A stretch of DNA of 64,000 nucleotides from Heterodontus francisci (GCF_036365525.1 NW_027141721.1:434001-498000), one strand, 5' to 3'; shown: positions 117-57,819, numbered from the stretch's first letter. Program-made: numbers and translations. Notes: a model not told the origin generated them from the sequence alone.

Positions 117-1527
117 GATTTCTTCAGTCGATACTAACTCGATGTGTGAACGTGTGGAGTTTTCAACAACACACTTGCAGGCGGTTTCTATATTGTATCC
201 AATCAAATACCCAGCATCCGGTTGTCATTGTGATTGGCAGTCACTTACTGCGACACTCTGCTCCACCCCACTACTTTGCATAGCAATGTTGTAGAATGAT
301 ACAACACAGGAGGATAGGGGGAGATTGAATAGAGGTGTTCACATTTCAGAAAGGGATTTGATAGAGTATAATTCAGGGAAACTACCCTCTATACCCAGAG
401 AGTGTGCCCATCCTTTATTGCCTCTGAGAAGGTGGTGGTGAACCATCTTCGGGAATACCTGCTGGGCCATATCAGAGGGCAGTTAACAGTCAACCACATT
501 GCTGTGGGTCTGCAGTCACATATAGGCCAGACCAGGTAGGAATGGCGGATTTCCTTCCCTGAAGGTCATCAATGAATACGTTAGGTTTTTACGACACTCC
601 ATGTTCAGAATTGCTCTTACTTTCCATTACAGATTTTATTTATTTACTTAATTAAATTTAAATTCAATTTCTGCCCTGGTGAGAATTGAACTCAAGTCTG
701 GGGATCATTAGTCCAGGCCTCTGGATTACTAGTCCAGTAACATAACTGCTCTGCTACCGTACCTCCTTGCTGAATGGAGGTGAAAGGGTTAAATTGTTCA
801 CTGGTCTGAACTGCGTGTTTCTTTGAAGAACACATCAAATGTGACTCGAGTCTAAGATGAAAGTGGGTAAAGAGTTTTCAGCAGCTTCTGAACTCGCTGT
901 CAGGAGGCAGGTGTCCCAGAGATGAAGGTATCTGGAGAGGGGTCTCACTTTGAACAGTGTGAAACAGCGCTCAGATGGTTAATGGTTCTGCGCTGAGTTA
1001 GTTCCTGTGCATTAGGGGGTTGTTCGCCTCTGTGTAGTGAAGGTTAGAGGGAGATTAACCAGACTGGTATCAGGGATGAGGGACTTCAGTTACTGTGGAG
1101 AGACTGGAGAAGCTGGGGGTTTCTGCCCTTAGAGCAGAGAAGGTTAATTAGATGTGATACAGATATTGAAGATCATAGAGGATTTTGATAGATAATTGAT
1201 GATAAACCACATCTTCTACTGGTCAATATATAGAAAATCTATGAAAAGATGGTCATTCATTACATTACTGCAGTATGTTTAATTAGTTCATACAAAGTGT
1301 AATTACATAAAGATAGAGTTAGATAGATAGAGAGACAGAGAGATAGATAACCAGGTAAAGAGATAGATAAATAGAGAGACAGAGAGATAAACAATCAGGT
1401 GGACAGATAGATATGAACAGAAAGCTTCAATCTACTGCTGCCCCCTGCCAGTTGAAGATGAGCACTGAACTCCCGTTCATCCGCTGCAGGTTTTTGCAGC
1501 TGCTGATCCGCTTTCTCAAACACTGTG

Positions 1528-5950: not shown

Positions 5951-6435
5951 ATCTCTCCAGGCACAGAAATACACGGCCGAGTGATTCTCCCGCAGGCTGG
6001 AGGACTCCAGATTGAACTCGGAGTCTGTCGGTCTCTCGGCGGTGAAACCCTCCACCGTCCCCTCTGAGTTCTCCCGTTGTGCAGTTAGGGAGTGAAACAT
6101 TAGCTGCGGCTCCTTCCCCGGGTATTGTCTGTACCAGTACATGTAAGGGTTACTGGTGCCATCCACGGTGCATTTCAGCTTCACCTGCTCCTCAGAAAAT
6201 TTGGAGACAGCGGCGGGAGTCTGGTGGATAGTCTGTGAGTTCACATCTGGGAAGGAGACAGGGAGAGGAGGAGATCAATAAACAGGGAAATTCAGTCCAG
6301 TGGGGAGAGAGAAAGAGAGAGAAGGAGAGAACGAAATAAATAAAACCATATCCTAAAGAAATGTTAAGTAGAATTATAGTTTCAATAAAATCCCTTACGG
6401 TGAAACAGGGTGATCAGAGTCAGTAACAGATACAT
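5951..6435 (-). CDS. TRBV: V3: family-A TCR V segment, intact ORF with a 21-bp RSS spacer
   Basis: Leader 6399-6435; V exon 5951-6246 (SQTIHQ..CTVDGTSNPYMYWYRQ..YFCAWRD); heptamer 5944-5950, nonamer 5914-5922, spacer 21 bp. Confidence 0.9.
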
Positions 6436-9965: not shown

Positions 9966-10592
9966 AACCCGGAAACACAATGAGCTCCAATATAGTGACA
10001 GAGCGCCCAGAACCTAAACCATCCAGCATCTGCGGTACCTTGTGTTCAGTTCACCAGACTGTAACCGGGATGTAGTTCTATAATTATCAGGAGAGGTTCA
10101 TAGACAAGTTTCAAAGTCCCTATTGAAACATCATCAATAATCTGATACTTATCACGGTCCGACACCGCCCTCTGCTGTCGCTGTGGATAAAGACAACATT
10201 GTCAGTGAATAAAACACAACTTTGTCTGTCTGCCTACCAGCTATCTATCGACCTATCTCCCTACCTATCTGATCTTCACTTCACACATTAAACCCTTTTA
10301 TAATCTTTCTAAGAACTATGAATGTTCACCCTTCAGTCTTCTCCTTTCTGGAGCAAAGATGTTCAAACTATCTTTGTTCCGATATCATTCCTGTGAAGTC
10401 TATTTCACAATTCCCCTGTGCTTCGATTTCTAACCTCTCACTTTCTGTTTAAATCCGCCCTGTCTTCTTGTGAAAAACACTTTTCCAATGCCAAAAACAA
10501 CTAACAGGACGCAGCACCGCCTGGTTTTATCTGAAACAGGTGTTTCCTGCTGCCTTTGGGGTTTTTGTTGAACTGCTCCATCTCTCACTGTG

Positions 10593-11048
10593 AAGACTCC
10601 AGGCACAGAAATACACGGCCGAGTGATTCTCACGCAGGCTGGAGGACTCCAGTTTGAACTCGTACTTATTAATTTTCTCGGCGGTAAAACCTTTCCCCGT
10701 CCCCTCTGGATCCACATAGTTAGCAGTACTGGAGTAAAACATCAACAGCGGCTCCTTCCCCGGGTGTTGTCTGTATCAGTACATGGAGATGCTACTGCTG
10801 CTCCCCTTGACAGTGCACATCAGTTCTACTCCTTTCCCGGGAAATCTGGAGACAGCGGTGGGAGTCTGGTGGATAGTCTGTGAGTTCACATCTGGGACAG
10901 AGATGGACAGAGGAGGAGATCAGTAAACAGGGAATTTCTGGGAATGAAAGGGAGACAGGGAGAGGAGAGGAAGGTTATTAACGATAATCTTTGCATTTCA
11001 TGCTCACTTACAGTGAAACAGGATTATCAGACCCATTAACAGATACAT
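10593..11048 (-). pseudogene. TRBV: V5: family-A TCR V pseudogene
   Basis: Leader 11012-11048; V exon 10593-10891; conserved Trp TGG>TGA at 10776-10778; RSS spacer only 17 bp (heptamer 10586-10592, nonamer 10560-10568). Confidence 0.92.
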
Positions 11049-12910: not shown

Positions 12911-13383
12911 AAGACTCCAGGCACAGAAATACACGGCCGAGTGATCCTCCCGCAGGCTGGAGGACTCCAGGTTGAAGTCGAAGTTACTCGGTCTCTCGGC
13001 GGTGAAACCGTCCACCATCCCCTCTGATTTCACGTTTTGTGCAGCGATAGAGTAAAACATTATCTGCGGCTCCTTCCCCGGGCATTGTCTGTACCAGTAC
13101 ATGTAGAGGATACTGGTGCTGCTGCCCTGCACGGTGCACTTCAGTTCCACTCTCTCACCAGGCAATTTAGAGACAGCGGTGGGAGTCTGGTGGATAGTCT
13201 GTGAGTTCACATCTGGGAAAGAGACAGAGAGATCAGTAAACAGGGAAATTCAGTGCCTTGGGGAGAGAGAAGAGAGAGAGAGAATCTAAGATGAATAAAA
13301 CGAAAGAAATGTTAAGTAGAATTATTGTTTCAATAAAATCCCTTACGGTGAAACAGGGTGATCAGAGTCAGTAACAGATACAT
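12911..13383 (-). CDS. TRBV: V6: family-A TCR V segment, probably functional
   Basis: Leader 13347-13383; V exon 12911-13212 ending YFCAWSL, extra Cys in WYRQCPG; CACAGTG 12904-12910, 23-bp spacer, ACAAAAACC 12872-12880. Confidence 0.93.
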
Positions 13384-14693
13384 CTTTTACTTTATGCTGC
13401 CTTCTGAATCAGCAAAGAGAAGAGAGCAGGAGTGATGAGTGTTGTCAATAACCAACTCACTGTTTGAAAATCATTGGGAGGAACAGGGAGAGCATTAGGA
13501 AGTGATGCAGAGATGGTGACGCCCAGATCAACAAATTAGAGTGGAGTAGGTTGACAACGTCTCTCTCTCTATCTATCTCAATCCGCCTTCCTCTCTCTTT
13601 CTTACACTTTGTTTCTATCTCTCTCTCTCTGCATGTATCGAGCTTTATGTCTCCAACTCTTTCAATCTCTTTCTCACTCTGTATCTGTGTCTGTGTGTGT
13701 GTGTGTGAGTGTGTCTGTGTGTGTGTGTGTCGTTCTCTCTCTGTCTCCCTCTGTCCCGTTCATTTACGCTGAGTTTTTCCTCTCTATGTCTCCCTGATTC
13801 ACCCTCTCTGTCTCTGTGTTTTATCACCGGATGTATTGAGTCCCTGTGCATTGGGGGTTGTTCCCCTCTGTGCAGTGAAGGTGAGAGGGATATTAACCAG
13901 ACTGGTGCCAGGGATGAGGGACTTCAGTTACTGTGGAGAGACTGGAGAATGTGGGGGTTTCTCTACTTGCAGCACAGAAGGTTAATGGTAGATGTGATAC
14001 AGACATTGAAGATCATAGAGGATTTTGACAGATAATTGATGACAAACCACATCATATATGGTCAATATATAGTTAATCTATGAAAATATGGTCATTCATT
14101 ACATTATTACAGTATGTTTAATCAGTTCATACAAGCTGTAATCATCTAAAGATAGAGTTAGATAGATAGCGAGAAAGAGCGACAGATAACCAGGTAGAGA
14201 GATAGATAGATAGACAGTCAGGTACACAGATAGATATATAGAGAGGTAGAGAAATACAGAGATAGAGGGAAAGTCAGATAGGTAGAGATTTAGCGAGCTA
14301 GATAGAGAGGCAGTCACTGCCCATGTAAAAGACAGGGATGTTAATTGGCATTCTCTCGTTTTACACCGGCTTTGTTGCTAGTGGGAGAGAGAGGGAGGGA
14401 GAGAGAGGGAGAGTAGGGATGGAGAAAGAGGGATGGAGAGAGGGGGAGAGAGGGGGATGGAGAGAGGGATGGAGAGAGGGATGGAGAAAGAGGGATGGAA
14501 AGAGGGAGCGACAGGAAGTTATTGATCAGTCATGATCTCATTGAAGGTCGGAGTGTTTCCGAGGTGATGAATGGTCTCCTTGTGTTCCCAGGTCACTGTT
14601 AAAGTGTGTTGCAGACTCTGATGTTTATCATGGTCCTACAGTGCACTCTGCTGTCCCTTTGGAGAAAGGAAACACAGTGACATGACACCACAC

Positions 14694-14697
14694 CGTA

Positions 14698-14772
<75 letters not shown>

Positions 14773-14790
14773 GTGTCTGTCTGTCTATCG
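14694..14790. repeat. (TCTG)n(TCTA)n tetranucleotide microsatellite
   Basis: Seen directly. Confidence 0.95.
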
Positions 14791-14824
14791 TGTTTACCCT
14801 TCAGTCTTCTCCTTTCTGGAGCAA

Positions 14825-15208
14825 AGGTTGAACTGGGAGTCAGTCGGTCTCTCGGCGGTGAAACCGCCCACCGTCCCCTCTGGATCCACATAGTTAACAG
14901 TACTGGAGTAAAACATCAACAGCGGCTCCTTCCCCGGCTCTTGTCTGTACCAGTACATGGAGAGGTGACTGCTGCTCCCCTCCACGGTGCACCTCAGTTC
15001 CACTCATTTCTCGGGAAACCTGGAGACTGCGGCGGGAGTCTGGTGGATAGTCTGTGAGTTCACATCTGGGAGAGAGATGGAGAGAGGAGGAGATCAGTAA
15101 ACAGGGAACTTCTGGGAATGGAAGGGAGACAGGGAGAAGACAGGAAGGTTCTGAAGGATAATCTTTGTATCCTTGAACCAGGATTATCAGAGCCAGGAAC
15201 AGATACAT
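14825..15208 (-). pseudogene. TRBV: V7: family-A V pseudogene, 3'-truncated
   Basis: TGA at 15004-15006; FR3 end, second Cys and RSS deleted (joined to downstream flank at about 14825); leader ATG at 15208 but splice donor deleted relative to the paralog at 51890. Confidence 0.9.
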
Positions 15209-16135
15209 CTCCCACTTGACACTGCCCTCTCAAACAGCAAAGGAAGTGGAACAGAGGAAATCAGTTCTGTGACTAACCAATCCGCTCTTTCCAAGTCATT
15301 GAGTAAAACATGAAGGGCATGAGGAAGTAATGCAGTGTTGGACACGCCCCTTCCAGCACCCAACCAATCAGAATGGACGTGGTTGCTTATGATGGTTGAG
15401 TGACTGGAGTAAGTGTTGTTGACATCCCCAACAAGGGTGTCTGTTGTTCAGTTTCTAATTTGCTGATTAGAAATCTCCAATTGTACGTAATGAACCTCAT
15501 CGGCATTCCCACATTAGCCACATGTAGATTTCCAATTATAGACATCTGGATTCCAAATGATCTGCTCCTGTAGGGGATGTATTAGTGTGTGGCTGACTTG
15601 ACTAGATTCTTAATCCACAGCCTCGGCTAGAGTTATAGCGACGTGGGGCGGGGGAGGAGGGGGGTGAATCCCACCAACACAAATAATGACATTTCAATGT
15701 CATTAATAAATCTATATTTTCAAAAGAATCTCGTCTAATGGTGACCATTGTTGCAACAATCCATCTAGTTCACTGATGTTAGGGAAGGAAATCTACCGCC
15801 TTCACCTGGTCTGGTCTACATGTGACTCCAGATCCACACAATGTGGTTGACTGTTAAATGCCCTCTGGAATGGCCAAGCAAGTCACTCAGTTCAAGGGCA
15901 ATTAGGGATGGGCAATAAATGATGGCAGAGCCAGCGAGGCCCACATTCCATGAACGAATTAAGAAAAACAGCCAGATGTTGATTCACAAATGGTCAGGTG
16001 GGACTCCTGGCAAACGTTTTCTGCAACATTGGCCCGAGGGAAGTAGGTGGAACAATATCTGGGTCACACTGGGCTGCTGATCTATTCTACAGCTTGGTCT
16101 GTGCTCATTACTGTGCCCATCACCATCAGGGAGGA

Positions 16136-18025
16136 TCAAATCTACTGCTGCCCACTGCCGGGGGAAGATGAGCACTGAGATTCAATCTACTGCTGCCCCC
16201 TGCCGGGGGAAGATGAGCGCAGAGATTCAATCTACTGCTGCCCCCTGCCGGGGGAAGATGAGCACTGAGATTCAATCTACTGCTGCCCCCTGCCGGGGGA
16301 AGATGAGCACTGAGATTCAATCTACTGCTGCCCCCTGCCGGGGGAAGATGAGCGCAGAGATTCAATCTACTGCTGCCCCCTGCCGGGGGAAGATGAGCGC
16401 AGAGATTCAATCTACTGCTGCCCCCTGCCGGGGGAAGATGAGCGCAGAGATTCAATCTACTGCTGCCCCCTGCCGGGGGAAGATGAGCACTGAGATTCAA
16501 TCTACTGCTGCCCCCTGCCGGGGGAAGATGAGCACTGAGATTCAATCTACTGCTGCCCCCTGCCGGGGGAAGATGAGCGCAGAGATTCAATCTACTGCTG
16601 CCCCCTGCCGGGGGAAGATGAGCACTGAGATTCAATCTACTGCTGCCCCCTGCCGGGGGAAGATGAGCACTGTGATTCAATCTACTGCTGCCCCCTGCCG
16701 GGGGAAGATGAGCGCAGAGATTCAATCTACTGCTGCCACCTGCCGGGGGAAGATGAGCGCAGAGATTCAATCTACTGCTGCCCCCTGCAGGGGGAAGATG
16801 AGCGCAGAGATTCAATCTACTGCTGCCCCCTGCCGGGGGAAGATGAACACTGAGATTTAATCTACTGCTGCCCCCTGCCGGGGGAAGATGAGCGCAGAGA
16901 TTCAATCTACTGCTGCCCCCTGCCGGGGGAAGATGAGCACTGAGATTCAATCTACTGCTGCCCCCTGCCGGGGGAAGATGAGCGCAGAGATTCAATCTAC
17001 TGCTGCCCCCTGCCGGGGGAAGATGAGCATTGAGATTTAATCTACTGCTGCCCCCTGCCGGGGGAAGATGAGCGCAGAGATTCAATCTACTGCTGCCCCC
17101 TGCCGGGGGAAGATGAGCGCAGAGATTCAATCTACTGCTGCCCCCTGCCGGGGGAAGATGAACACTGAGATTTAATCTACTGCTGCCCCCTGCCGGGGGA
17201 AGATGAGCGCAGAGATTCAATCTACTGCTGCCCCCTGCCGGGGGAAGATGAGCACTGAGATTCAATCTACTGCTGCCCCCTGCCGGGGGAAGATGAGCGC
17301 AGAGATTCAATCTACTGCTGCCCCCTGCCGGTGGATGGTGAGCACTGAGATTCAATCTACTGCTGCCCCCTGCCGGGGGAAGATGAGCGCAGAGATTCAA
17401 TCTACTGCTGCCCCCTGCCGGGGGAAGATGAGCGCAGAGATTCAATCTACTGCTGCCCCCTGCCGGGGGAAGATGAGCGCAGAGATTCAATCTACTGCTG
17501 CCCCCTGCCGGGGGAAGATGAGCGCAGAGATTCAATCTACTGCTGCCCCCTGCCGGGGGAAGATGAGCACTGAGATTTAATCTACTGCTGCCCCCTGCCG
17601 GGGGAAGATGAGCACTGAGATTTAATCTACTGCTGCCCCCTGCCGGGGGAAGATGAGCACAGAGATTCAATCTACTGCTGCCCCCTGCCGGGGGAAGATG
17701 AGCGCAGAGATTCAATCTACTGCTGCCCCCTGCCGGGGGAAGATGAGCACTGAGATTTAATCTACTGCTGCCCCCTGCCGGGGGAAGATGAGCACTGAGA
17801 TTTAATCTACTGCTGCCCCCTGCCGGGGGAAGATGAGCACTGAGATTTAATCTACTGCTGCCCCCTGCCGGGGGAAGATGAGCACTGAGATTTAATCTAC
17901 TGCTGCCCCCTGCCGGGGGAAGATGAGCGCAGAGATTCAATCTACTGCTGCCCCCTGCCGGGGGAAGATGAGCACTGAGATTTAATCTACTGCTGCCCCC
18001 TGCCAGTTGAAGATGAGCACTGAAC
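16136..18025. repeat. 45-bp tandem array, about 42 units, each carrying a CTCF-like motif on the minus strand
   Basis: Unit tcaatctactgctgccccctgccgggggaagatgagc(ac/gc)(t/a)gagat with strict 45-bp period; ends about 20 bp from the V8 nonamer. Confidence 0.97.
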
Positions 18026-18082
18026 TCCCGTTCATCCGCTGCAGGTTTTTGCAGCTGTGGATCCGTTTTCTCAAACACTGTG

Positions 18083-18816
18083 CGATACTGCAAGCGCAGA
18101 AATAGACAGCGGTGTGAGATGGAGTGGCATCTCTCAGTGCCAAAGTAAACAGTGTATTGCTGGCTCTGTCTGCCTTAAATGACTCGGACGTGTAATTGGT
18201 AACAGACCCTTCTGTAGCAGAAAAGAACAGAGCTTCCAGTGCCCTGTCTGGTTGTTGTCTGTACCAGTACATATAGGAATAGGCAGTATTGGTCAGCGTG
18301 CATCTGAGTGTTGTCGACTCTCCTGCAGCAATAGATAGGATAGAGGGCGACTGTTCCACATAGGAGGAGAGTATTCCTGTGGAATGGAACATCGATTAGA
18401 TTATTATTTCAGTCAATAATGGATTGGAGCAGGGACTGCATTGCAAAAAAGAAAGGGCTTACATTAATATAGCGCCGTTCAGGACCTCAGGACATCATAA
18501 AGGGCTTTGCAACCAATGTAGTTACTCCCTCAGTACTGTCTCTGCGACAGTGCAGCACTCCCTCAGTACTGCCGCTGCGACAGTGCAGCACTCCCTCAGT
18601 ACTGCCTCTGTGACAGCGCAACACTCCCTCAGTCCTGACACCTGGGGTGTTTGCCTTGACTTTGAGCTCAAGAGTACACGAGTGAGACTCAGACACAGGA
18701 GTGTTACGGAACAGAATCACCGCTGACATTGCAATACATTATTCTACAGTTTCAGACTTTGACTTACGTGGGAAAAGTGCAGCCATCAAGATTAGAGACA
18801 GAACTTCATGCAACAT
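18083..18816 (-). CDS. TRBV: V8: family-B TCR V segment, probably functional
   Basis: Leader 18768-18816; V exon 18083-18376 ending YFCACSI; CACAGTG 18076-18082, 23-bp spacer, GCAAAAACC 18044-18052. Confidence 0.93.
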
Positions 18817-20019
18817 GATTTCTTCATTCGATACTAACTCGATGTGTGAACGTGTGGAGTTTTGAACAACACACTTGCAGGTTGTTTCTATATTGTGTTC
18901 AATTAAATACCCAGCATCCGGTTGTCATTGTTATTGACAGTCACTTACTGCGACACTCTGCTCCTCCCCATTACTTTAGATAGCAATGTTGCAGAATGAT
19001 ACAACACAGGAGGATAGGGGGAGATTGAATAGAGGTGTTCACATTTCACAAAGCGCTTTGATAGAGTAGAATTCAGGGAAGCAACACTCTATACCCAGAG
19101 AGTGTGCCCATCCCTTATTGCCCCTGAGAAGGTGTTGGTGAACCATCTTCGGGAATACCTGCTGGGCCAAATCAGAGGGCAGTTAACAGTCAACCACATT
19201 GCTGTGGGTCTGCAGTCACATATAGGCCAGACCGGGTAAGGACGGCAGATTTCCTTCCCTGAATGTCATCAGTGAACACATTGGGTTTTTACGACACTCC
19301 ATGTTCAGGATTACTCATACTTTCTCTGATAGATTTTTATTTATTTAATTGAATTTAAATTCCATTTCTGCCCCTGCTGAGAATTGAACTCATATCTGGG
19401 GATCATTAGTCCTGGCCTCTGGATTACTAGTCCAGTAACATAACTGCTCTGCTACCGTACCTCCGTGGTGAATGAGAGTTAAGGGGTTAAATTGTTTACT
19501 GGTCTGAAGTGCTAGTTTCCTTGAAGCACACATCAAATGTGACTCGAGTCCGAGATGGAAGTGGGTAAACAGTTTTCAGCAGCTTCTGAACTCGCCATCA
19601 GGAGGCAGATGTCCCAGTCCCGGAGATGAAGGTATCTGGAGAGGGGTCTCACCTTTGAACAGTGTGAAACAGCGCTCAGATGGTTAAGTGTTCTGAGCTG
19701 AGTTGGTTCCTGTACATTGGGGGGGGGGGGGGGGTGTCGCCTCTGTGTAGTGAAGGTTAGAGAGAGAATAACCAGACTGGTACCAGGGATGAGGGACTTC
19801 AGTTACTGTGGAGAGACTGGAGAAGCTGGGGGTTTCTCTCCTTAAAGCAGAGAAGGCTAATGGTAGATGTGATTGAGATATTCAAGATCATTGATAGATA
19901 ATTGATGACAAACTATATCATCTACTGGTCAATATGTAGAAAATCTATGAAAAGATGGTCATTCATTACATTACTGCAGTATGTTTAATTAGTTCATACA
20001 AACTGTAATTACCTAAAGA

Positions 20020-20200
20020 TAGAGTTAGATAGATAGAGAGACAGAGAGATAGATAACCAGGTAGAGAGTTAGATAGATAGAGAGACAGAGAGATAGATAA
20101 CCAGGTAGAGAGTTAGATAGATAGAGAGACAGAGAGATAGATAACCAGGTAGAGAGATAGATAGATAGAGAGACAGTCAGGTAGACAAATAGATATAGGG
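20020..20200. repeat. GATA/GA-rich tandem repeat, unit about 43 bp
   Basis: Repeated agagagatagataaccaggtagagagttagatagatag; a related expanded array lies at 50140-50520. Confidence 0.8.
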
Positions 20201-21119
20201 AGAGATAAGGAAATAGAGAAATAGAGGGAAAGTCAGATAGGTTGAGAAGTAGCGAGCTAGATAGAGAGCCAGTCACTGCCCCTGCAAAAGACAGGGATTT
20301 TAATTGGCATTCTCTCCTTTTACACCGGCTTGTTAGCTGGAGTGAAAGAGAGGGATGGAAAGAGAGCGAGGGAGAGAGATGGAGAGAGAGAGAGAGAGAG
20401 GGATGGAGAGAGGGATGGAGAGGGAGAGAGGAGGATGCAGAGAGGGAGCGACTGGAGATTATTGATCAGTCATGATCTGATTGAAGGGCGGAGTGTTTTC
20501 GAGGTGATGAATGAACTCCTTGTGTTCCCAGGTCACTGTTAAAGTGTGTTCCAGAATCTGATGTTTATCATGGTCCTGCAGCGCACTCCGCTGTCCCTTT
20601 GGAGAAAAAAAACACAGTGACAGAAANNNNNNNNNNNNNNNNNNNNNNNNNNNNNNNNNNNNNNNNNNNNNNNNNNNNNNNNNNNNNNNNNNNNNNNNNN
20701 NNNNNNNNNNNNNNNNNNNNNNNNNNNNNNNNNNNNNNNNNNNNNNNNNNNNNNNNNNNTTTATCTGATCTTCACTTCACATATTGAAATCAATAATAAT
20801 CTCTCCAAGACGGCTGAAGGTTTACCCTTCAGTCTTCTCCTTTCTGGAGCAAATCTCCCCTGATGTTCAAACTATATTGATAATTTTAACCTCTGTGTCC
20901 TGCTTTCATTCCTGTAAAGTCTATTTTACAATTCCCCTGTGTTTCTATATCGAACCTGTCTCTTTCTATTTAAATCCGCAGTCTTCTTGTGAAAAACACA
21001 TTCCCAATGATTAAAAAACACCCAACAGGATGCAGCACCGCCTGGTTTTATCTGAAACAGGTGTTTCCTGCTGCCTTTGGGTTTTTTGTTCAACTGCTCC
21101 ATCTCTCTGAGTCACTGTG

Positions 21120-26885: not shown

Positions 26886-27700
26886 CTCACTGGCTGCACA
26901 GTAATACACCGCCGCATCCGCAGCCTTAACCTTGAGGACCCTCAGGCTGCATCGTTTGTCCTCGGGCCTTATAATCTTCACCTCCTCTTCAAATTTTCCT
27001 TCGTACGTGGGTGAGCTTCCAGTGAAAGAATAGCCCATTAGGGTGAGCCCCTGCCCGGCATACTGCCGATACCACAGCATAATGCTCTTTCTACTGTCAT
27101 TCTGGTAACAGTTTAATTCTGCTGGTTCGCCTCCCTTCACTGCCACCAGAGTTGGCCACTGGTGTATCACCTCTGCTAGAGTTTTGCCTTGAGAAATAAG
27201 GAGAATAGTTTAAAAAGTTTGGAACATATTGTGACATATGATAACCAACTAAACGATCCAAATAGATAATTAGATAATACTAGATAACTATATAGGCAGA
27301 CAATATATAGTTAAATGATATATTTGTAGATATATAGATAATAAACAGATAGATATAGAGATTGAAAAATAATGTAGCAAGTGAAATGAGACAGACAAAT
27401 TAACCCAGAATTAGGGCAAACTTATCGGTTAAAGATAGCTATAGTAGCGTCACGAATATATAAGTAACTTTCATTCAGTCAATAATTTCATTAAGTAAAT
27501 ATTATTTACAGTGAAAGTAAAGTATGTAGTTTAAGAAATGACAGAAAATCGACTTCAATGATGTTTTATCAATCTAGTTTCATAGAAGTTAGCAGTGAAT
27601 GAAAACACAGCATGTATTTTAGCGCAGGTATCTTTATGAACGATGACTACCTACATGGAAGAAGTGAACAGACGATTAGGAAGAGTTTGGCAAACTGCAT
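26886..27700 (-). CDS. TRBV: V11: divergent single-copy TCR V segment (family D), probably functional
   Basis: Leader 27655-27700 (MQFAKLFLIVCSLLP); V exon 26886-27187 ending DAAVYYCAASE; CACAGCA 26879-26885, 23-bp spacer, ACAAAAACC 26847-26855. Confidence 0.92.
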
Positions 27701-31998: not shown

Positions 31999-32491
31999 AT
32001 GTATCTGTTACTGAGTCTCATGGTCTTATTTCAAAGTAAGGGATCTTTCTCACCACCACCCCACACCCCCATTGTTTGTGTTAACAGCTCTCTTTCTTAT
32101 TTTCTTTCTCTCTATCTTTCTCTCCTTCCTTCATTCTTCACATCCCAGATTGTCCCTGTTCACTGACCTTCTTCTCTCCCGGTCTCTTCCCCCAGGCGTG
32201 ATCTCAGCGAGGGTCCACCAGACTCCCACCGCAGTCTCCAGATTTCCTGGGGAGGGAGTGGGACTGGAGTGCCGTGTGGAGGGTGAGAGTAGCGGTTACA
32301 TGTTCTGGTACAGACAGGACCCGGGGAAGGAGCCGCGGCTGATGTTTTACTCCGCAGCTACACGAAGTGTGAACTCAGAGGGGACGGTGGAGGGTTTCAC
32401 TGCCAAACGACCGACTGGTTCCCAGTTCAACCTGGAGTCCACCAGCCTGCGGGAGAATCACTCGGCCCTGTATTTCTGTGCCTGGAGTCAG
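31999..32491 (+). CDS. TRBV: V13: inverted family-A-like TCR V segment, probably functional
   Basis: Leader 31999-32035 (MYLLLSLMVLFQ); V exon 32196-32491 ending YFCAWSQ; CACAGTG 32492-32498, 23-bp spacer, ACAAAAACA 32522-32530. Confidence 0.93.
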
Positions 32492-32629
32492 CACAGTGAC
32501 TCAGAGAGATGGAGCAGCTCAACAAAAACACCAACAGAAACACCTGTTTCAGATAAAAGCCTGCAGCTCTGTATCGTGTTGGGTTTATCTATTGCAGTGT
32601 GAACATGTCTTCTACATGAAGACACATAA

Positions 32630-33580: not shown

Positions 33581-33699
33581 AGGTTTTTCTATTCCCATAT
33601 TCTTTGCTACTGTTTCGAAGTACGGCCCCTGATGAAATGTAGGAAGAGTGGAAGCCCGTTTCTACAAGGCAAGATCCCAGGAACAGACAACGTGCAGAT

Positions 33700-34560
33700 C
33701 CTGCTGAAGTTGTTGTTGAGTTTGTTGGTGTTTTTCCTGTTGAGGTTGTTGTTGAATTTGTTGGTATTTTTCCTGCTGAGGTTGTTGTTGAATTTGTTGG
33801 TGTAATACTCCTGCTGAAGTTGTTGTTCAATTTTATTGGTGTTTTTCTCCTGCTGAAGTTGTTGTTGACTTTGTTGATGTTTTTCTCCTGCTAAACCTGT
33901 TGTTGGCATTGTTGGTGTTTTTCCTGTTGAAAGCGTTGTTGAATTTGATGGTGTTTTTCCTGTTGAAGTTGTTGTTGAATTTGCTGGTGTTTTTATCCTG
34001 CTGCAGTTGCTGTTGAATTTGTTGGTTTTTTTCTCCTGCTGAAATTGTTTTTGTAATTGTTGGTGTTATGTCCTGTTGAAGTTGTTGTTGAATTTGTTGA
34101 TGTTTTTCCTGTAATAAATTGTTGTTGAACTTGTTGGTGTTTTTCCTGTTGAAGTTGTTTAGTTCAGAGTTTAGTTTAGAGATACAGCACTGAAACAGGC
34201 CCTACGGCCTACCATGTCTGTGCCAACCACCAACCACCAATTTATACAAATCCAACACTAATTCCATATTCCTACCACATCCCAACCTGTCCCTGTATTT
34301 CCCTGCCACCTACCTTTACCACGGGCAATGTATAATGGCATGTGGGAGGAAACCGGAGCACCCACAGGAAACCCACGCAGACACAGGGAGAACTTGCAAA
34401 CTCCACACAGGCAGAATTGAACCCGGGTCGCTGGAGCTATGAGGCTGCGGTGCTAACAACTGGGCCACTGTGCCGCCCTTTTCATTGGTGCTTTTATTTT
34501 TCCTGTTGAAGTTATTGTTGAATTTGTTAGTGTTTTTTTGTGCTGCAGTTGTTTTTGTAT
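33700..34560 (-). repeat. CAA-rich minisatellite in reverse orientation, interrupted by a SINE
   Basis: cctgctgaagttgttgttgaatttgttggtg units, reverse complement of the 41740-42620 array. Confidence 0.9.
34160..34480 (-). mobile_element. HE1-type tRNA-derived V-SINE
   Basis: Head GGGCGGCACAGTGG..GGTTCAATTC, V-domain TGTGTGGAGTTTGCA..TCTCCCTGTGTCTGCGTGGGTTTCC, CR1-like (CTAAA)n tail. Confidence 0.85.
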
Positions 34561-39889: not shown

Positions 39890-40509
39890 ATGGCAGTCTC
39901 AGCTAAAAACATCTCAATCTTGGTCATCTTATTGCTTGGACATTGGATTTGGTGTAAGTGCTATCCCTTCAGCAGGAGGAAGTAGATTCAATAGTAATCT
40001 CCCAAATGGCTATTGGATCAGGGCTTGGAGCGGGGAAATTGGGAGGGCAATGGGGTAGGAGCAGGGGCAAGTGCGGCTAACTCGATAGCTCTTTCAAACA
40101 GCAGATACGATGGGCAGAACGGCCTCTTTCTATTCTGTTAGATTTTATGATTTATGCTACCATTTTCCTTCCATGATTCTGAATTACTTTCTTTTATGGA
40201 ATGTGTTCCAGGGGTTCAGTCTGCACCCACTGTGGTCCAGACTCCAGCTGCGGCTTCTATTCGACCGGGGAAGCCCCTCGCCCTCGGCTGCAGCTTGGAG
40301 GGAGCCAGCATGGGCAGCTACACCATGCACTGGTACAGGCAGGAGGGGAAGGCAGTAAAGTGGATGTGCAATGAGCACGGCAGCTGTGGGCCAGGCTTTG
40401 AGAAGCGGTTCACTGTGCAACACGACGCTGCAAGCAACCGATTCTCCCTGCAGCTGGTCGACCCCCAGCCGACAGACACTGCGACCTACTACTGTGCAGC
40501 GAGTATGGG
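39890..40509 (+). CDS. TRBV: V15: inverted TCR V segment of a distinct short-CDR2 family, probably functional
   Basis: Leader 39890-39953 (MAVSAKNISILVILLLGHWIW); V exon 40212-40509 (CSLEGASMGSYTMHWYRQ..DTATYYCAASM); CACAGCG 40510-40516, 23-bp spacer, ACAAAAACA 40540-40548. Confidence 0.9.
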
Positions 40510-40714
40510 CACAGCGATACAACCCTGCGGCAGAGTGAGACAAAAACATCCTCACCCTCCCAACCTGCCCCTAAAACACCCACCTGTGAGCAGCATCATC
40601 GTGAAAGCTCAGCAAACCAACGAGCCCCTGTGTATCCCTATTGGTGACCTTTGCAACACCATTTCATCTGAAAACACTTTACAGCCAGTTAGCCAGAAAG
40701 TCATACAGCCTGTA

Positions 40715-41739: not shown

Positions 41740-42620
41740 CAGGAGTAAAACAGCAACAAATTCAAGAAAAATATCAACAAATTCAACAACAACTTCAGCA
41801 GGTGAAAAACACAAACAAATTCAACAACAACTTCAACAGGTGAAAAGCACCAACAAATTCAACAACTTCAGCAGGAAAAAAAAAATCAACGATTACAACA
41901 ACAACTTCAGCAGGAGAAAAACACCACAAATTCAACAACATTAGCGGGAAAAAACATTCAACATATACAACAACAACTTCAGCAGGAGAAAAACACCAAA
42001 ACATTCAACAACAAAGTCAGCAGGGTTTAAAGAACACCAACAAATTCAACAACAACTTCAGCAGGAAAAAAAAATCAATGAATACAACAACAACTTCAGC
42101 AGGAGAAAAACACCAAAAAATTCAACAGCAAAGTCAGCAGGCAGTAAAGAACTCCAACAGATTCAACAACAACTTCAGCAGGAAAAAAAATCAACGAATA
42201 CAACAACAACTTCAGCAACAGTTAAAAAGCCCCACAATTCAAAAACAACTTCAGCAGGAGAAAAACACCAACAAATTCAACAACAACTTCAGCAGTAGAA
42301 AAACACCAACAAATTCAACAATAACTTCAGCAGGAGAAAAACACCAACAAATACAACAACAACTTCAGCTGCAGTAAAACAAAACCCAACAAATCCAACA
42401 ATAACTTCAGCAGGAGAGAAAAACACCAAAAATCCAACAACAACTTCAGTCGGAAGAAAGCACCAACAAATTCAACAACAACTTCAGTCAGAAGAAGGCA
42501 CCAACAAATTCAACAACAACTTCAGTCAGAAGCAGGCACCAAGAAGTTCAACAACAACTTCAGTCGGAAGAAGACACCAACAAATTCAACAACATCTTCA
42601 GCAGGAGAACAACACCAACA
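41740..42620 (+). repeat. CAA-rich minisatellite, unit about 36-38 bp, more than 20 copies
   Basis: caccaacaaattcaacaacaacttcagcaggagaaaaa units. Confidence 0.93.
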
Positions 42621-50520: not shown

Positions 50521-51478
50521 GACAGGTAGATACAGAGAGAGAGAGGTAGATCGAGGGAAAGTCAGATAGGTAGAGAAATAGCAAGCTGGATAGAGAGACA
50601 GTCAGGTAGACAGATAGATATAGAGAGAGGTTGAGAAATAGAGAGATAGAGGGAAATTCAGAGAGGTAGAGAAATAACGAGCCAGACAGAGAGACAGTCA
50701 CTGCCCCTGTAAAAGACAGAGATGTTAATTGGCATTCTCTCATTTTACACCAGCTTGGTAACTAGAATGAGGTAGAGGGATGGAGGGAGAGGGAAAGAGA
50801 GGGAGGGAGAGAGAGGAATGGAGGGAGACTGTTGGAGAGAGGGAGAGAGAGAGATGGAGAGAGTGAGAGAGAGGGATAGAGAGAGGGAGCGACAGGAAGT
50901 TATTGATCAGTCATGATCTCCTTGAAGGGCGGTGTGTTTCCGAGGTGATGAATGTTCTCCTTGTGTTCCCAGGTCACTGTTAAAGTGTGTTCCAGACTCT
51001 AATGTTTATCATGGTCCTACAGCGCACTCCGCTGTCCCTTTGGAGAAAAAAAATACAGTGACATAAAACGACAACGTATGTATCTATCTCTCTATCTATC
51101 GATCTCTCTATCTATCTGTATTTATCTGATCTTCATTTCACATATTAAAATCTTTAATAATCTCTCTAAGAACGCTGAATGTTTACCCTTCAGTTTCTCC
51201 TTTCTGGAGCAAAGATCCCCTGATGTTCAAACTATCTTGATAATTTTTACCTCTGTGTTCTGATATCATTCCTGTGAAGTCGATTTCACAATTCTCCTGT
51301 GTTTCCATATCTAACCTGTTACTTTCTATTGAAATCCGCCTGTCTTCTTGTGAAAAACATGTTCCCAATGATAAAAACACCCAACAGGATGCAGCACCGC
51401 CTGATTTTATCTGAAACAGGTATTTCCTGTTGCCTTTGGGGTTTTTGTTGAACTGCACCATCTCTCTGAGTCAGTCTG

Positions 51479-51930
51479 AAGACTCCAGGCACAGAAATAC
51501 ACGGCCGAGTGATTCTCCCGAAGGCTGGAGGACTCCAGGTTGAACTGGGAATCAGTCTGTCTCTCGGCGGTGAAACCATCCACCGTCCGCTCTGGATCCA
51601 CATAGTTAGCAGTATTGGAGTAAAACATCAACAGCGGCTCCTTCCCCGGGTATTGTCTGTACCAGTACATGTTGAGGTTACTGCTGCTCCCCTCCACAGT
51701 GCACATCAGTTCCACTCCTTTCCCGGGAAATCTGGAGACAGCGGCGGGAATCTGGTGGATAGTCTGTGAGTTCACATCTGGGAGAGAGATGGAGAGAGGA
51801 GGAGATCAGTAAACAGGGAATTTCTGGGAATGAAAGAAAGACAGGGAGAGGAGAGGAAGGTTCTGACTGATAATCTTTGTATTTGGCACTTACGGTGAAC
51901 CAGGATTATCAGAGCCAGGAACAGATACAT
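51479..51930 (-). CDS. TRBV: V17: family-A TCR V segment, intact ORF with defective heptamer
   Basis: Leader 51894-51930; V exon 51479-51777; heptamer CAGACTG (51472-51478) lacks the invariant CAC; 23-bp spacer and consensus nonamer 51440-51448. Confidence 0.9.
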
Positions 51931-52799
51931 CTCCCACTTGACACTGCCCTGTCAAACAGCAAAGGCAGTGGAACAGATGAGATCAGTTCTGTGGCTAACC
52001 AATCCGCTCCTGACAAATCATTGAGTAAGACATGAAGGGCATGAAGAAGTGATGCAGTGTTGGACACGCCCCCTTCCACCACCCAACCAATCAGAATGGA
52101 CGTGGTTGCTTATGATGGCTGAGTGACTGGATTAAGTGTTGTTAACATCCTCAACAAGGGTGTCTGTTGTTCAGTTCCTAACTTATTGATTAGAAATCTC
52201 CAACTGTTCATATCCAGATTCCAAATGAACCTCATCGGCATTCCCAAATTAGCCACATGTAGATTCCCAATGATAGACATCTGGATTCCAAATGATCTGC
52301 TCCTGTGGAGGATGTATTCGTGTGTTGCTAATTTAACTAGACTCCTCATCCACAGCCTCAGCTAGTGTTTTTGTAACGTGAGGGTGAATCCCACCAATAC
52401 AGATCATGAAATTGCAGCAATCCATTTAGTTCACTGATGTCCATTAGGGATGGAAATCTGCCTCCTTCACCTGGTCTGGCCTACTTGTGACTCCAGATCC
52501 ACACATTGTGGTTGACTCTTAAAAGCCCTCTGCAATGACCTAGCAAGTCATCCAGTTCAAGGGCTATTAGGAATGGGCAATAAATGCTGGCCTCGCTGGC
52601 GAGGCCCACATCTCATGAACGAATTAAGAAAAACAGGCCGATGTTGATTCACAAATAGTCAGCTGGGAGTCCTGGCAATCATTTCCTGCAACACTGGCCC
52701 AAGGGAAGTAGGTTCAACAATATCTGGGTCACACTGGGCTGCTGATCTATTCGACAGCTTGGTCTGTGCTCATTACTGGGCCCATAACCATCAAGGTGG

Positions 52800-52980
52800 C
52801 TCAAATCTACTGCTGCCACCTGCTGGCGGAAAGTGAGCACTGAGATTCAATCTACTGCTGCCACCTGCTGGCGACAAATGAGCACTGAGATTCATTCTCT
52901 GCTGCCCCCTGCCGGGGGAGGATGAGCACAGAGATTCAATCTACTGCTGCCCCCTGTCGGTGGAAGATGAGCACTGAACT
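52800..52980 (-). promoter_or_regulatory. Four diverged copies of the 45-bp unit, candidate CTCF sites
   Basis: Cores CCAGCAGGTGGCAG (x2), CCGGCAGGGGGCAG and CCGACAGGGGGCAG on the minus strand next to the V18 nonamer. Confidence 0.7.
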
Positions 52981-53036
52981 CCCGTTCATCCGCTGCAGGT
53001 TTTTGCAGCTGCGGATCCGCTTTCTCAAACACTGTG

Positions 53037-53935
53037 CGATACTGCAAGCGCAGAAATAGACAGCGGTGTGAGATGGAGCGGCGTCTCTCAGTGCCAAAGT
53101 AAACAGTGTATTGCTGGTTCTGTCTGCCTTAAATGACTCGGACGTGTAATTGGTAACAGACCCTTCTGTAGCAGAAAAGAACAGAGCTTCCAGTGCCCTG
53201 TCTGCTTGTTGTCTGTACCAGTACATATAGGAATAGGCAGTATTGGTCAGCGTGCATCTGAGTGTTGTCGACTCTCCTGCTGCAATCGATAGGATAGAGG
53301 GCGACTGTTCCACATAGGAGGCGAGTATTCCTGTGGATGGAACACCGATTAGATTATCATTTCAGTCAATAATGGATTGGAGCAGGGGTTGCATTGCAAG
53401 AAAAAAAGGGCTTACATTGATATAGCGCCATTCAGGACCTCAGGACATCAGAAAGGGCTTTGCAACCAATGTAGTTACTCCCTCAGTACAGCCTCTGCGA
53501 CAGTGCAGCACCCACTAAGTACTGCCTCTGTGACAGTGCTGCACTCCCTCAGTACTGCCTCTGCGACAGTGCAGCACACCCTCAGTACTGCCTCTGTGAC
53601 AGTGCTGCACTCCCTCAGTACTGCCTCTGCGACAGTGCAGCACACCCTCAGTACAGCCTTTGCGACAGTGCAGCACTCCCTCACTACTGCCTCTGCGACA
53701 GTGCAGCACTTCCCCAGTACTGCCTCTGCGACAGTGCAGCACTCCCTCAGTCCTGACACGTGGTTTGTCAGCCTTGACATTGAGCTCAAATGTTCTGGAG
53801 TGAGACTCAGACACAGGAGTGTTCCGGACAGAATCACCCCTAACATTACAATACATTATTCGTAACTGTTTCTGACTTTGACTTACGTGGGAACAGGGCA
53901 GGCATCAAGATGAGACAGAGAACTTCATGCAACAT
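53037..53935 (-). CDS. TRBV: V18: family-B TCR V segment, probably functional
   Basis: Leader 53887-53935; V exon 53037-53330; CACAGTG 53030-53036, 23-bp spacer, GCAAAAACC 52998-53006. Confidence 0.93.
53477..53755. repeat. 33-bp intronic minisatellite, about 8 copies
   Basis: Tandem copies visible directly. Confidence 0.9.
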
Positions 53936-55282
53936 GATTTCTTCATACGATACTAACGCGATGTGTGAACGTGTGGAGTTTTCAACAGCACACTTGCAGG
54001 CGGTTTCTATATTGTATCCAATCAAATACCCAGCATCCGGTTGTCATTGTTATTGACAGTCACTTACTGCACACTCTGCTCCACCCCATTACTTTGCATA
54101 GCAATGTTGTTGAATGATACAACACAGGAGGATAGGGGGAGATTGAATAGCGGTGTTCACATTTCAGAAAGGGCATTGATAGAGTACAATTCAGGGAAAC
54201 AACCCTCTATACCCAGAGAGTGTGCCCATCCCTTATTGCCCCTGAGAAGGTGGTGGTTAACCATCTTCGGGAAAACCTGCTGGGCCATATCAGAGGGCAG
54301 TTAATAGTTAACCACATTGCTGTGGGTCTGCAGTCACATATAGGCCAGACCTGGTAGGAATGGCGGATTTCCTTCCCTGAAGGTAATCAATGAAGACATT
54401 GGGTTTTTAAGACACTCCATGTTCCGGATTACTCATACTTTCCATGACAGATTTTTATTTATTTAATTAATTGAATTTAAATTGCATTTCTGCCCCGGTG
54501 GGAATTGAACTCAAGTCTGGGGATCATTAGTCCAGGCCTCTGGATTACTAGCCCAGTCACATAACTGCTCTGCTGCCAAACCTCCGTGGTGAATGGGAGT
54601 TAAATGGTTAAAATGTTCACTGGTCTGAACTGCTAGTTTCTTTGAAGAACACATTAAATGTGACTCGAGTCTGAGGTGAAAGTGGGTAAAGAGTTTTCAG
54701 CAGCTTCTGAACTCGCTGTCAGGAGGCAGGTGCCCCAGAGATGAAGTTATCTGGAGAGGGGTTTCGCCTTTGAACAGTGTGAAACAGCGCTCAGATGGTT
54801 CAGGGTTCTGCGCTGAGTTAGTTTCTGTGCATTGGGGAGTTGTTCACCTCTGTTTAATGAAGGTTAGAGGGAGATTAACAAGACTGGTACCAGGGATGAG
54901 GGACTTCAGTTACTGTGGAGAGACTGGAGAAGCTGGGGGTTTCTCTCCTTGGAGCAGAGAAGGTTAATGGTAGATATGATACAGTTATTGAAGATCATAG
55001 AGGATTTTGATAGATAATTGATAACACATCACATCATCTACTGGTCAATATATAGAAAATCTATGCAAAGATGGTCATTCATTACATTACTGCAGTATGT
55101 TTAATTAGTTCATACAAACTGTAATCACCTAAAGATATAGTTAGATAGTTACAGAGACAGAGAGATAGGTAACCAGGTAGAGAGGTAGCTAGATAGAGAG
55201 ACAGAGAGATAGATAACCAGGTAGAGAGATAGATAGATAGAGAGACAGACAGGCAGGCAGACAGACAGTTATGAACTCTGAC

Positions 55283-55420
55283 ATTCAATCTACTGCTGCC
55301 CCCTGCTGGTGGAAGATGAGCACTGACATTCAATCTACTGCTGCGCCCTGCTGGTGGAAAATGAGCAGTGAGACTCAAACCACTGCTGCCACCTGCCGGT
55401 GGATGATGAGCACTGAAATC
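55283..55420 (-). promoter_or_regulatory. Three copies of the 45-bp unit, candidate CTCF sites
   Basis: Cores CCAGCAGGGGGCAG, CCAGCAGGGCGCAG and CCGGCAGGTGGCAG next to the V19 nonamer. Confidence 0.7.
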
Positions 55421-55475: not shown

Positions 55476-56453
55476 CGATACTGCAAGTGCAAAAATAGAC
55501 AACGGTGTGAGATGTAGCAGCGTTTCTCAGTGCCAAAGAAAACAGTGTATCGCTGAAACAAAAACAAGAAATGCTGGATTCACTCAGCAGGTCTGGCAGC
55601 ATCTGTGGAAAGAGAAGCAGAGTTAACGTTTCGGGTTGTGACCCTTCTTCGGAACAGTTCCGAAGAAGGGTCACTGACCCGAAACGTTAACTCTGCTTCT
55701 CTTTCCACAGATGCTGCCAGACCTGCTGAGTGAATCCAGCATTTCTTGTTTTTGTTTCAGATTTCCAGCATCCGCAGTATTTTGCTTTTATTTTAGTGTA
55801 TCGCTGAATCTGACTGCCATAAATGACTCGGACGTGTAATTGGTAACAGTCACTTCTGTGGCAGAATAGAACAGAGCTTCCAATTCCCTGTCTGGTTGTT
55901 GACTGTACCAGTACATTAAGGTCCAGCCAGTATTGGTCAGCGTGAATCTGAGTGTTGTCGACTCTCCTGCTGCAATCGATAGGATCGAGGGAGACTGTTC
56001 CACACAAGAGGCGAGTATTCCTGTGGAATGGAACATCGATTAAATTATTATTTCAGTCAATAGCGGATTAGAGGAGGGACTGCATTGCAAGAAAAAAGGA
56101 CTTTCATTAACAGAGCGCCGTTCAGGACCTCAGAAAGGGCTTTGCAATCAATGTAGTTACTCAATCAGTACTGCCTGTGCGACAGTGCAGCACTACCTCA
56201 GTACTGCCTCTGTGACAGTGCAGCACTCCCTCAGTCCTGCCTGTGCGACATTGCAGCACTCCCTCAGTCATGACACCCGGGGTGTTCAGCCTTGATTTTG
56301 AGCTGAAGTGTTCTGGAGTGAGACTCTAACACAGGCGTGTTCCAGACAGAATCACCGCTAACATTACAGTACATTATTCGACACAGTTTCTGACTTTGAC
56401 TTACGTGGGAAGAATGCAGCCATCAAGGTTAGACAGAGAACTTCATGCAACAT
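55476..56453 (-). pseudogene. TRBV: V19: family-B V pseudogene disrupted by an insertion
   Basis: Leader 56405-56453; V exon 55476-56020 with Cys23>Phe and a 237-bp insertion in FR3; degenerate RSS CACAGTA / GCATCAACC. Confidence 0.92.
55558..55794. mobile_element. Fold-back (inverted) Penelope-like pLTR insertion with 14-bp TSD
   Basis: TSD agtgtatcgctgaa at 55544-55557 and 55795-55808; inverted arms of about 100 bp centred at about 55656. Confidence 0.8.
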
Positions 56454-57819
56454 GATTTCTTCATTCGATACCAACTCGATGTGTGAACGTGTGGAGTTTT
56501 CAACAACACACTTGCAGGCGGTTTCTATATTATATCCAATTAAATGCCCAGCATCCGGTTGTCATTGTTATTGGCAGTCACTTACTGCGACACTCTGCTC
56601 CACCCCATTACATTGTATAGCAATGTTGTAGAATGATACAACACAGGAGGATAGGGGGAGATTGAATAGAGGTGTTCACATTTCAGAAAGGGCTTTGATG
56701 GAGTAGAATTCAGGGAAGCAACACTCTATACCCAGAGAGTGTGCCCATCCCTTATTGCCCCTGAGAAGGTGGTGGTGAACCATGTTAGGGAATACCTGCT
56801 GGGCCATATCAGAGGGCAGTTAACAGTCAACCACATTGCTGTGGGTCTGCAGTCACATATAGGCCAGACCGGGTAAGAATGGCAGATTTCCTTCCCTGAA
56901 GGTCATCAATGAATACGTTGGGTTTTTACGACACTCCATGTTCAGAATTGCTCTTACTTTCCATTACAGATTTTATTTATTTACTTAATTAAATTTAAAT
57001 TCAATTTCTGCCCTGGTGAGAATTGAACTCATGTCTGGGGATCATTAGTCCAGGCCTCTGGATTACTAGTCCACTAACATAACTGCTCTGCTACCGTACC
57101 TCCTTGCTGAATGGAGATTAAAGGGTTAAATTGTTCACTGGTCTGAACTGCGAGTTTCTTTGAAGAACACATCAAATGTGACTCGAGTCTAAGATGAAAG
57201 TGGGTAAAGAGTTTTCAGCAGCTTCTGAACTGGAGAGGGGTCTCACTTTGAACACTGTCAAACAGCGCTCAGATGGTTAATCGTTCTGCGCTGAGTTAGT
57301 TCCTGTGCATGAGGGGATTGTTCGCCTCTGTGTAGTGAAGTTTAGAGGGAGATTAACCAGACTGGTATCAGGGATGAGGGACTTCAGTTACTGTGGAGAG
57401 ACTGGAGAAGCTGGGGATTTCTGCCCTTAGAGCAGAGAAGGTTAATGGTAGATGTGATACAGATATTGAAGATCATAGAGGATTTTGATAGATAATTGAT
57501 GACTAACCACATCTTCTACTGGTCAATATATAGAAAATCTATGAAAAGATGGTCATTCATTACATTACTGCAGTATGTTTAATTAGTTCATACAAACTGT
57601 AATTACCTAAAGATAGAGTTAGATAGATAGAGAGACAGAGAGATAGATAACCAGGTAGAGAGATAGATAGACAGAGAGATAAACAATCAGGTGGACAAAT
57701 AGATATGAACAGAAAGCTTCAATCTACTGCTGCCCCCTGCCAGTTGAAGTTGAGCACTGAACTCCCGTTCATCCGCTGCAGGTTTTTGCAGCTGCTGATC
57801 CGCTTTCTCAAACACTGTG

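Follow-up and report, generated by a model that had tools for sequence, protein, structure and literature searches.

In mouse Igh, CTCF sites (CBEs) adjacent to the recombination signal (RSS) of a V gene are a proven lever on V choice. Those of the proximal VH genes, such as VH81X-CBE, raise the use of the V gene to which they are attached and impede RAG scanning further upstream (10.1101/2020.01.01.891473). The V CBEs of mouse Tcrb are convergent with the CBEs of the recombination centre, and synapsis there can also be diffusion-based (PMC10772921); at a TCR locus such as that of the shark, a scanning barrier may thus be less important. Outside the antigen-receptor loci, CTCF binding to the DXZ4 tandem repeat depends on chromatin and methylation state, and the orientation of Dxz4 controls contacts (PMC3491370, 10.1101/165340). 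RSS-adjacent CBEs, clusters of co-oriented CBEs, CTCF-binding tandem repeats (DXZ4/Dxz4) and methylation-gated CTCF sites are already known. The literature that we searched described no dense CTCF-motif minisatellite with a 45-bp period tied to a V-gene RSS, and contained nothing on CTCF at shark antigen-receptor loci. Cartilaginous fish are the oldest lineage with V(D)J recombination.

The window analysed here is a stretch of 64,000 nucleotides from Heterodontus francisci (GCF_036365525.1, NW_027141721.1:434001-498000), whose features are listed in Table 1. It is a V cluster with 15 RSSs of the 23-bp-spacer type, 13 on the minus strand and two on the plus strand. One of its family-B V genes, V8, looks structurally intact, because the V exon is open and matches Pfam V-set and because the leader and splice sites are readable; the leader and V exon were read separately rather than as a joined spliced model. 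A large protein search returned one database relative of V8, a catshark hypothetical Ig-like protein with 61% identity, and tblastn with this protein placed the V8 leader at about 18769-18819. PDB searches gave lists swamped by scFv matches, in which chains (beta or other) were not told apart. The leader intron of every family-B V contains a 33-bp tandem repeat. Its raw-read depth was about 1000-1500 versus about 5 for the flanks, and its words were hugely abundant in all four read runs; it is therefore a member of a very high-copy genomic repeat.

Table 1. Positions of the V8 gene, the 45-bp repeat family and related features, counted from the first letter of the window.
Feature	Position	Strand	Details
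V8 recombination signal	18044-18082	-	Heptamer CACAGTG, 23-bp spacer, nonamer GCAAAAACC
V8 V exon (family B)	18083-18376	-	Open frame, ends YFCACSI; Pfam V-set, E 6.5e-17
V8 leader intron	18377-18767	-	GT..AG, phase 1, acceptor 18378-18377
V8 leader exon	18768-18816	-	ATG at 18816, MLHEVLSLILMAALFP, then one base before gtaagt donor
45-bp minisatellite beside V8 (heptamer end 18082)	16139-18020	-	41.8 units; Tandem Repeats Finder and direct reading
RSS-proximal degenerate unit of V8	about 17984-18028	-	Core CTGGCAGGGGGCAG, 10.6 bits
Far-side flank of V8 array	15751-16138		88% identical to 52412-52803, the matching flank of the 4-unit array
Family-A-like pseudogene, next V along V sense from V8	14824-15072	-	In-frame stop, no recognisable RSS
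Unit beside V with heptamer end 1527	motif 1436-1454	-	1 unit, after RSS 1489-1527; CTGG form, 10.6 bits
Array beside V with heptamer end 53036	52804-52977	-	3.9 units, after RSS 52998-53036
Array beside pseudogene V with heptamer end about 55475	55271-55416	-	3.2 units
Unit beside V with heptamer end 57819	motif 57728-57746		1 unit, CTGG form
Unit beside V with heptamer end 60002	motif 59911-59929		1 unit, CTGG form
33-bp leader-intron repeat	18524-18637; 1969-2181; 53477-53755; 56165-56268; 58261-58402; 60444-60656		
GGGACAGCAGAG[T/G]GCG-type motif	3956, 7056, 10163, 14639, 62874	-	
GGGACAGCAGAG[T/G]GCG-type motif	34584	+	

The array beside V8 is a real minisatellite (VNTR), that is, a series of head-to-tail copies of a unit between 10 and 100 bp long. 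Tandem Repeats Finder gave a period of 45, 41.8 copies, 95% matches, 0% indels and a score of 3323. The core CCGGCAGG[G/T]GGCAG is present in 39 array units, always on the V-sense strand and at an exact spacing of 45 bp. Between the array end and the V8 nonamer lie 23 bp, as follows from the position of the 23-bp-spacer RSS. The degenerate unit closest to the RSS has the same sequence as the single copies found next to three paralogous V genes. No N runs were found in or beside the array, the nearest being at 20627. Three unit subtypes, set by three columns, follow each other in non-periodic order together with private variant units, and other substitution events number only about nine in 1.8 kb. 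The preliminary description, made from the sequence, had reported a 45-bp unit repeated about 42 times that ended about 20 bp from the V8 nonamer; these statements and its V-sense reading of the unit agree with the program output and with direct reading. The unit variants that it listed are real, but they are better described as the three subtypes. The unit, an imperfect palindrome, can also form a C5-GGCA-G5 hairpin (z -3.6), which would favour slippage.

We quantified the resemblance of the units to CTCF sites in three ways. The loose core pattern CCRSYAGRKGGCRS had 44 matches in the window versus 0.04 expected from shuffles. All 44 lie on the minus (V-sense) strand and within the 45-bp repeat family, 39 of them in the V8 array. 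The strict 15-bp consensus CCASYAGRKGGCRSY matched three times in 64 kb versus 0.01 expected; all three perfect matches are units of the two short paralog arrays, and the V8 units have one mismatch to it (G3). With an approximate MA0139.1 count matrix, so that bit scores and p are approximate as well, the V8 unit scores 16.9 of a possible 27.3 bits (p 1e-6), the CCAG units of the paralog arrays 22.4-22.9 bits (p ~1e-8) and the single-copy CTGG form 10.6 bits (p 3e-5). Motifs of such strength are often occupied in other vertebrates. The mammalian matrix is usable for a shark, because vertebrates from lamprey to human have the same two-part CTCF motif (PMC5504073) and because MA0139.1-type motifs in little skate show a boundary orientation bias, the CTCF orientation code (PMC10115646). 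Units of the CAGTGC type resemble the upstream (ZF9-11) module, whose consensus lies 2-7 bp from the core (PMC12885311), at only five of eight specified bases with a linker of about 6 bp, for which chance was estimated at ~0.15; about half of the units (GCGCAGAG type) differ there.

The placement and direction of these motifs are those expected of V-side CBEs. At V8, the first strong core is 80 bp from the nonamer, compared with 35 bp in two paralogs, and the weak proximal copy also lies at 35 bp. A candidate CTCF site is thus found within tens of bp downstream of a V RSS, as in the mouse proximal VH genes, and 39 co-oriented motifs form one block on one strand in 1.9 kb. The preliminary description had proposed that the units carry a CTCF-like core in a co-oriented array abutting the RSS, with poor matrix scores as grounds to abandon the idea. 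The 39 loose-core matches, at about 17 bits and p ~1e-6 with the approximate matrix, are not poor, and all cores are on the V-sense strand. Matrix matches of at least 11.5 bits within 3 kb downstream of any RSS in the window were likewise all V-sense, with none antisense, and six of them lie outside the 45-bp repeat family. This cluster-wide orientation echoes the co-oriented V-side CBEs of mammalian loci (PMC10772921), but it is suggestive only, since some of the matches are paralogous copies.

Compared with the systems described above, the V8 array combines familiar elements in a different arrangement. Like the CBEs of mouse proximal VH genes, its motifs lie directly downstream of a V 23-RSS in one shared orientation. 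However, the mouse genes have one CBE per V, whereas the shark has 39 motifs at 45-bp spacing beside V8 and 1-4 beside the paralogs. The mouse system is Igh with a shown effect, whereas the shark locus is a TCR V cluster with putative CTCF sites. The Igh 3'CBEs 'super-anchor' and Dxz4/DXZ4 also hold many CTCF sites of the same direction in one block, but DXZ4 units are kilobases long and the Igh 3'CBEs comprise some ten unique sites distributed across kilobases, in contrast to the shark unit of 45 bp. Since a complete CTCF zinc-finger footprint spans about 45 bp, full occupancy would result in a continuous CTCF-coated tract of 1.9 kb. With ordinary vertebrate minisatellites, the array shares a GC-rich unit, near-identical copies, strong differences in copy number and a tendency to form hairpins and slip. 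Unlike these, it is built from a CTCF-grade motif that always sits at the same place next to the RSS in one V family.

The other family-B V genes of the window allowed us to compare the array with its paralogs. A 45-bp unit follows the RSS in all six of these genes, with 1, 42, 4, 3, 1 and 1 units along the window, or 1, 1, 1, 3.2, 3.9 and 41.8 when partial copies are counted. In an alignment of the six RSS flanks, the RSS, a 35-bp linker and the first unit are all in register, and every family-B V has a CTCF-type site 35-80 bp beyond the RSS nonamer. Perfect 15-bp CTCF consensus sites are found in two units of the array beside the V with heptamer end 53036 (22.5 and 22.9 bits) and in one unit of the array beside the pseudogene V (22.4 bits). 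The V8 cassette (14825-20179) and 51537-55249 are duplicates with 88-95% identity, which extends to the flank on the far side of the array, and both cassettes have the order family-B V, array, shared flank, family-A V. Unit-to-unit divergence in the V8 array is far below the divergence of the cassettes, which indicates that the array either expanded recently, from 4 to 42 units, or has been kept homogeneous. The V8 array is shown to be a young, low-copy minisatellite, which grew from an RSS-flanking CTCF-type site by slippage or unequal exchange. As a separate observation, the unit at 17309-17353 inside the V8 array has the GGTGGATG variant, which characterises the RSS-proximal unit (55383-55411) of the pseudogene V. 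This unit is possibly a relic of an ancestral short array or a trace of paralog exchange.

Two other origins of the array were considered and rejected. A transposon or genome-wide repeat does not fit the read depth of the unit, which is similar to the depth over the V exon; with a depth more than 100-fold greater in the 33-bp repeat nearby, the 45-bp unit is by comparison low-copy. A coding repeat was suggested by a 655-aa ORF that runs through the array on the minus strand, yet three open frames of six are the chance result for a 45-bp unit. A Pfam search of this ORF found no match, and an Rfam search of 13000-21000 found no family. Read run X5, which behaves as RNA, also counts against a coding repeat: its depth is 0-235 in the array versus about 7000 in the V exon, and 0 in the leader intron adjoining the V exon.

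Reads were mapped to 17625-18700 only, i.e., the nine RSS-proximal units and the V gene, and copy number was taken from the depth ratio and not from spanning reads. In X11, a set of raw reads from another individual, the ratio of base coverage between array and V exon was 1.21; this fits the 52 units per six V genes of the assembly (P 0.47-0.67) and rejects 14 (P 0.001), although X11 is a capture library and other arrays and family-B V genes elsewhere in the genome add to these counts. We therefore consider it extremely improbable that the true locus has few units and that the assembler inflated the array. The reliance on depth and the short contigs of the older runs leave some room for such an artefact, but the rejection of a short array by the X11 ratio, the non-periodic order of the three subtypes, the private variant units and the lack of indels and N runs all argue against it. 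The contigs of X6, which have a different species label, contain tandem units, up to 2.5 of them and about 92% identical, as well as the unit-RSS-V junction. None of the differences listed for X6 falls in the core columns.

The reads were also examined for V8-specific letters. Six letters are private to V8 (including 18125T and 18333A and those at 18129 and 18327), and none of them was seen in X5 or in the DNA contigs of the same sample. Across all runs, V8-private letters were seen only in two of eight raw reads, at 18333. There is certainly no sign of V8 dominance in the RNA. One RNA-like contig of X5, of depth 49, is spliced from a cryptic GT donor in the leader intron, at 18462, to the V-exon acceptor (18376-18462). 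This is a non-productive minor splice, as the junction gives a stop codon in the V frame.

We read the array, tentatively and with a little less than even confidence, as a copy-number-variable, methylation-gated putative CTCF barrier beside the V8 RSS. With an unmethylated CpG at core positions 2-3, CTCF would occupy several of the 39 sites. The N-terminal, ZF3 side of CTCF sits downstream of the motif as written (PMC12885311), and it is this side that blocks cohesin (PMC10772921). In CTCF bound to the array, the cohesin-blocking side would face away from V8, along V sense. Extrusion from a downstream D-J-C would meet that face if V8 joins by deletion; D-J-C lies outside the window, and we infer both this mode of joining and the 'convergent' orientation. 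In the geometry of the mouse proximal VH genes, extruding cohesin that arrives from the D-J-C side would be halted at the array, close to the V8 RSS, and V genes further upstream would be less easily reached by linear scanning. The 39 sites lie 45 bp apart, and a multi-site barrier at 0.1-1.9 kb from the RSS would result even if they were only partly occupied. A methylated array would be inert.

The methylation gate in this model derives from the G at core position 3 of the V8 units, which creates a CpG at C2. Core positions 2-3 of CTCF sites may be CpG or CpA, and a fully methylated CpG at this place inhibits binding, as it does in the H19 control region, while C12 of the core is methylation-insensitive (PMC10484683). 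Given the CpG at these positions, the V8 units would thus be H19-type methylation-sensitive sites and the CCAG units of the paralogs would be of the CpA type. Both the V8 units and the sites of the H19/Igf2 imprinting control region, where methylation blocks CTCF (PMC10484683), have a core that starts with CCG and thus a CpG at positions 2-3; beyond these bases the cores diverge, and the likeness is one of sequence. The observed/expected CpG ratio is 0.38 in the array versus 0.37 in the window, which is CpG-depleted with an excess of TG and CA, and no CpG island covers the array. The pervasive methylation pattern of vertebrates extends to cartilaginous fish (PMC5437953). Considering this pattern and the lack of an island, the array is probably methylated by default, a real possibility that forms the main argument against CTCF occupancy.

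The preliminary description had pointed to an almost invariant core. Near-invariance is true of the unit as a whole, but the core is not special. Four of the nine rare substitutions fall within its 14 bp, which make up 31% of the unit (p 0.47), so rare substitutions are not depleted there and we rejected core invariance as a sign of selection. The lack of a constraint signal is consistent with a neutral VNTR, whose unit would come from an old CTCF-type site or a lookalike, expand beside V8 by slippage, and be methylated, nucleosome-packed and unbound in lymphocytes, without effect on recombination. This is a quite possible explanation, if on the whole a doubtful one. Most non-V8 units carry what would be CpG decay products at core positions 2-4 (CTGG, CCAG and CCGA, beside CCGG), and deamination of a methylated CCGG yields either CCAG or CTGG. 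In three family-B V genes, all functional-looking or nearly so, the single unit has only the weak CTGG form, whereas strong CTCF-type sites are kept beside a family-B pseudogene V. This pattern looks like neutral CpG decay, and unit copy number is likewise unrelated to V gene integrity. The CpG ratio without an island, the slippage-prone hairpin and the absence of V8 letters in RNA are also in line with a neutral array, and with unit divergence so far below cassette divergence, the expansion may be too young for selection to have tested it. Against neutrality, three perfect 15-bp sites together with 39 sites at p ~1e-6, all RSS-adjacent and in the orientation of V-side CBEs, are unlikely to be a coincidence, and tandem units persist in the second species label.

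If the motifs are bound, the order of the cassettes raises the question of which gene they would serve. With the family-A V about 0.8-1.1 kb further along V sense, the array could be a functional CTCF cluster that acts as the promoter-side CBE of this next gene, or as a general sub-domain boundary, and in mouse Tcrb CBEs act together with V promoters (PMC10772921). We find a role of this kind very unlikely. The family-A V downstream of V8 is a pseudogene, with a stop and no RSS, and the unit is tied to the family-B RSS at 23-35 bp in six of six copies, even where the family-A neighbour arrangement is missing.

The imperfect palindrome with its C5/G5 hairpin allows for actions in which CTCF has no part. 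The array could bind another zinc-finger protein, be a meiotic recombination hotspot of the GC-rich minisatellite kind, or act through a hairpin or G-rich structure. Its unit is that of a GC-rich minisatellite with a GGCAGG-type core, which we take to resemble the classical minisatellite cores. The CTCF match is nevertheless both specific and oriented, and we regard these alternatives as highly improbable.

The putative CTCF barrier would be of interest beyond V8. RSS-adjacent sites, many-site blocks and methylation gating have precedents, and what is new here are the paralog series in one window, the strict-consensus result, the reading of the CpG at C2, the failed constraint test and the depth check in a second individual. 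CTCF binding to the array would mean that antigen-receptor assembly followed a loop-extrusion logic as early as the jawed-vertebrate ancestor. The locus would then offer a natural series of 1, 3, 4 and 42 sites beside near-identical V genes, in which barrier strength could be related to site number. Without CTCF binding, the array would instead warn that even a tandem array of perfect motifs can be an inert VNTR. In its broadest form, the idea is that shark antigen-receptor V clusters use minisatellite-built CTCF barriers, varied by slippage from 1 to about 40 units and switched by CpG methylation at core position 2. We consider this generalisation unlikely. Were it true, it would amount to a heritable and fast-evolving dial on the V genes reached by the recombinase, with repertoire bias and locus partition set by VNTR length and not by point-conserved sites.

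Several further features of the cluster were observed along the way. The two V genes with 23-RSSs on the plus strand (32168-32530 and 40169-40548) are inverted relative to the other 13. Their region is bracketed by arrays of 36/38-bp repeats at 33699-34159 and 41765-42620 that are mutual reverse complements, which suggests an inversion. Downstream of family-A V genes, a GGGACAGCAGAG[T/G]GCG-type CTCF-like motif of 9-17 bits recurs, always on the local V-sense strand. Searches with tblastn found further V-like exons that the RSS screen had missed, at 5960-6253, 10581-10895, 26889-27185 and 51476-51784, of which at least the second has an in-frame stop. Finally, the V exon of a family-B pseudogene is interrupted at 55553-55760 by a perfect inverted repeat of 84 nt with a 40-nt loop, which looks like the insertion of a small hairpin (MITE-like) transposon.
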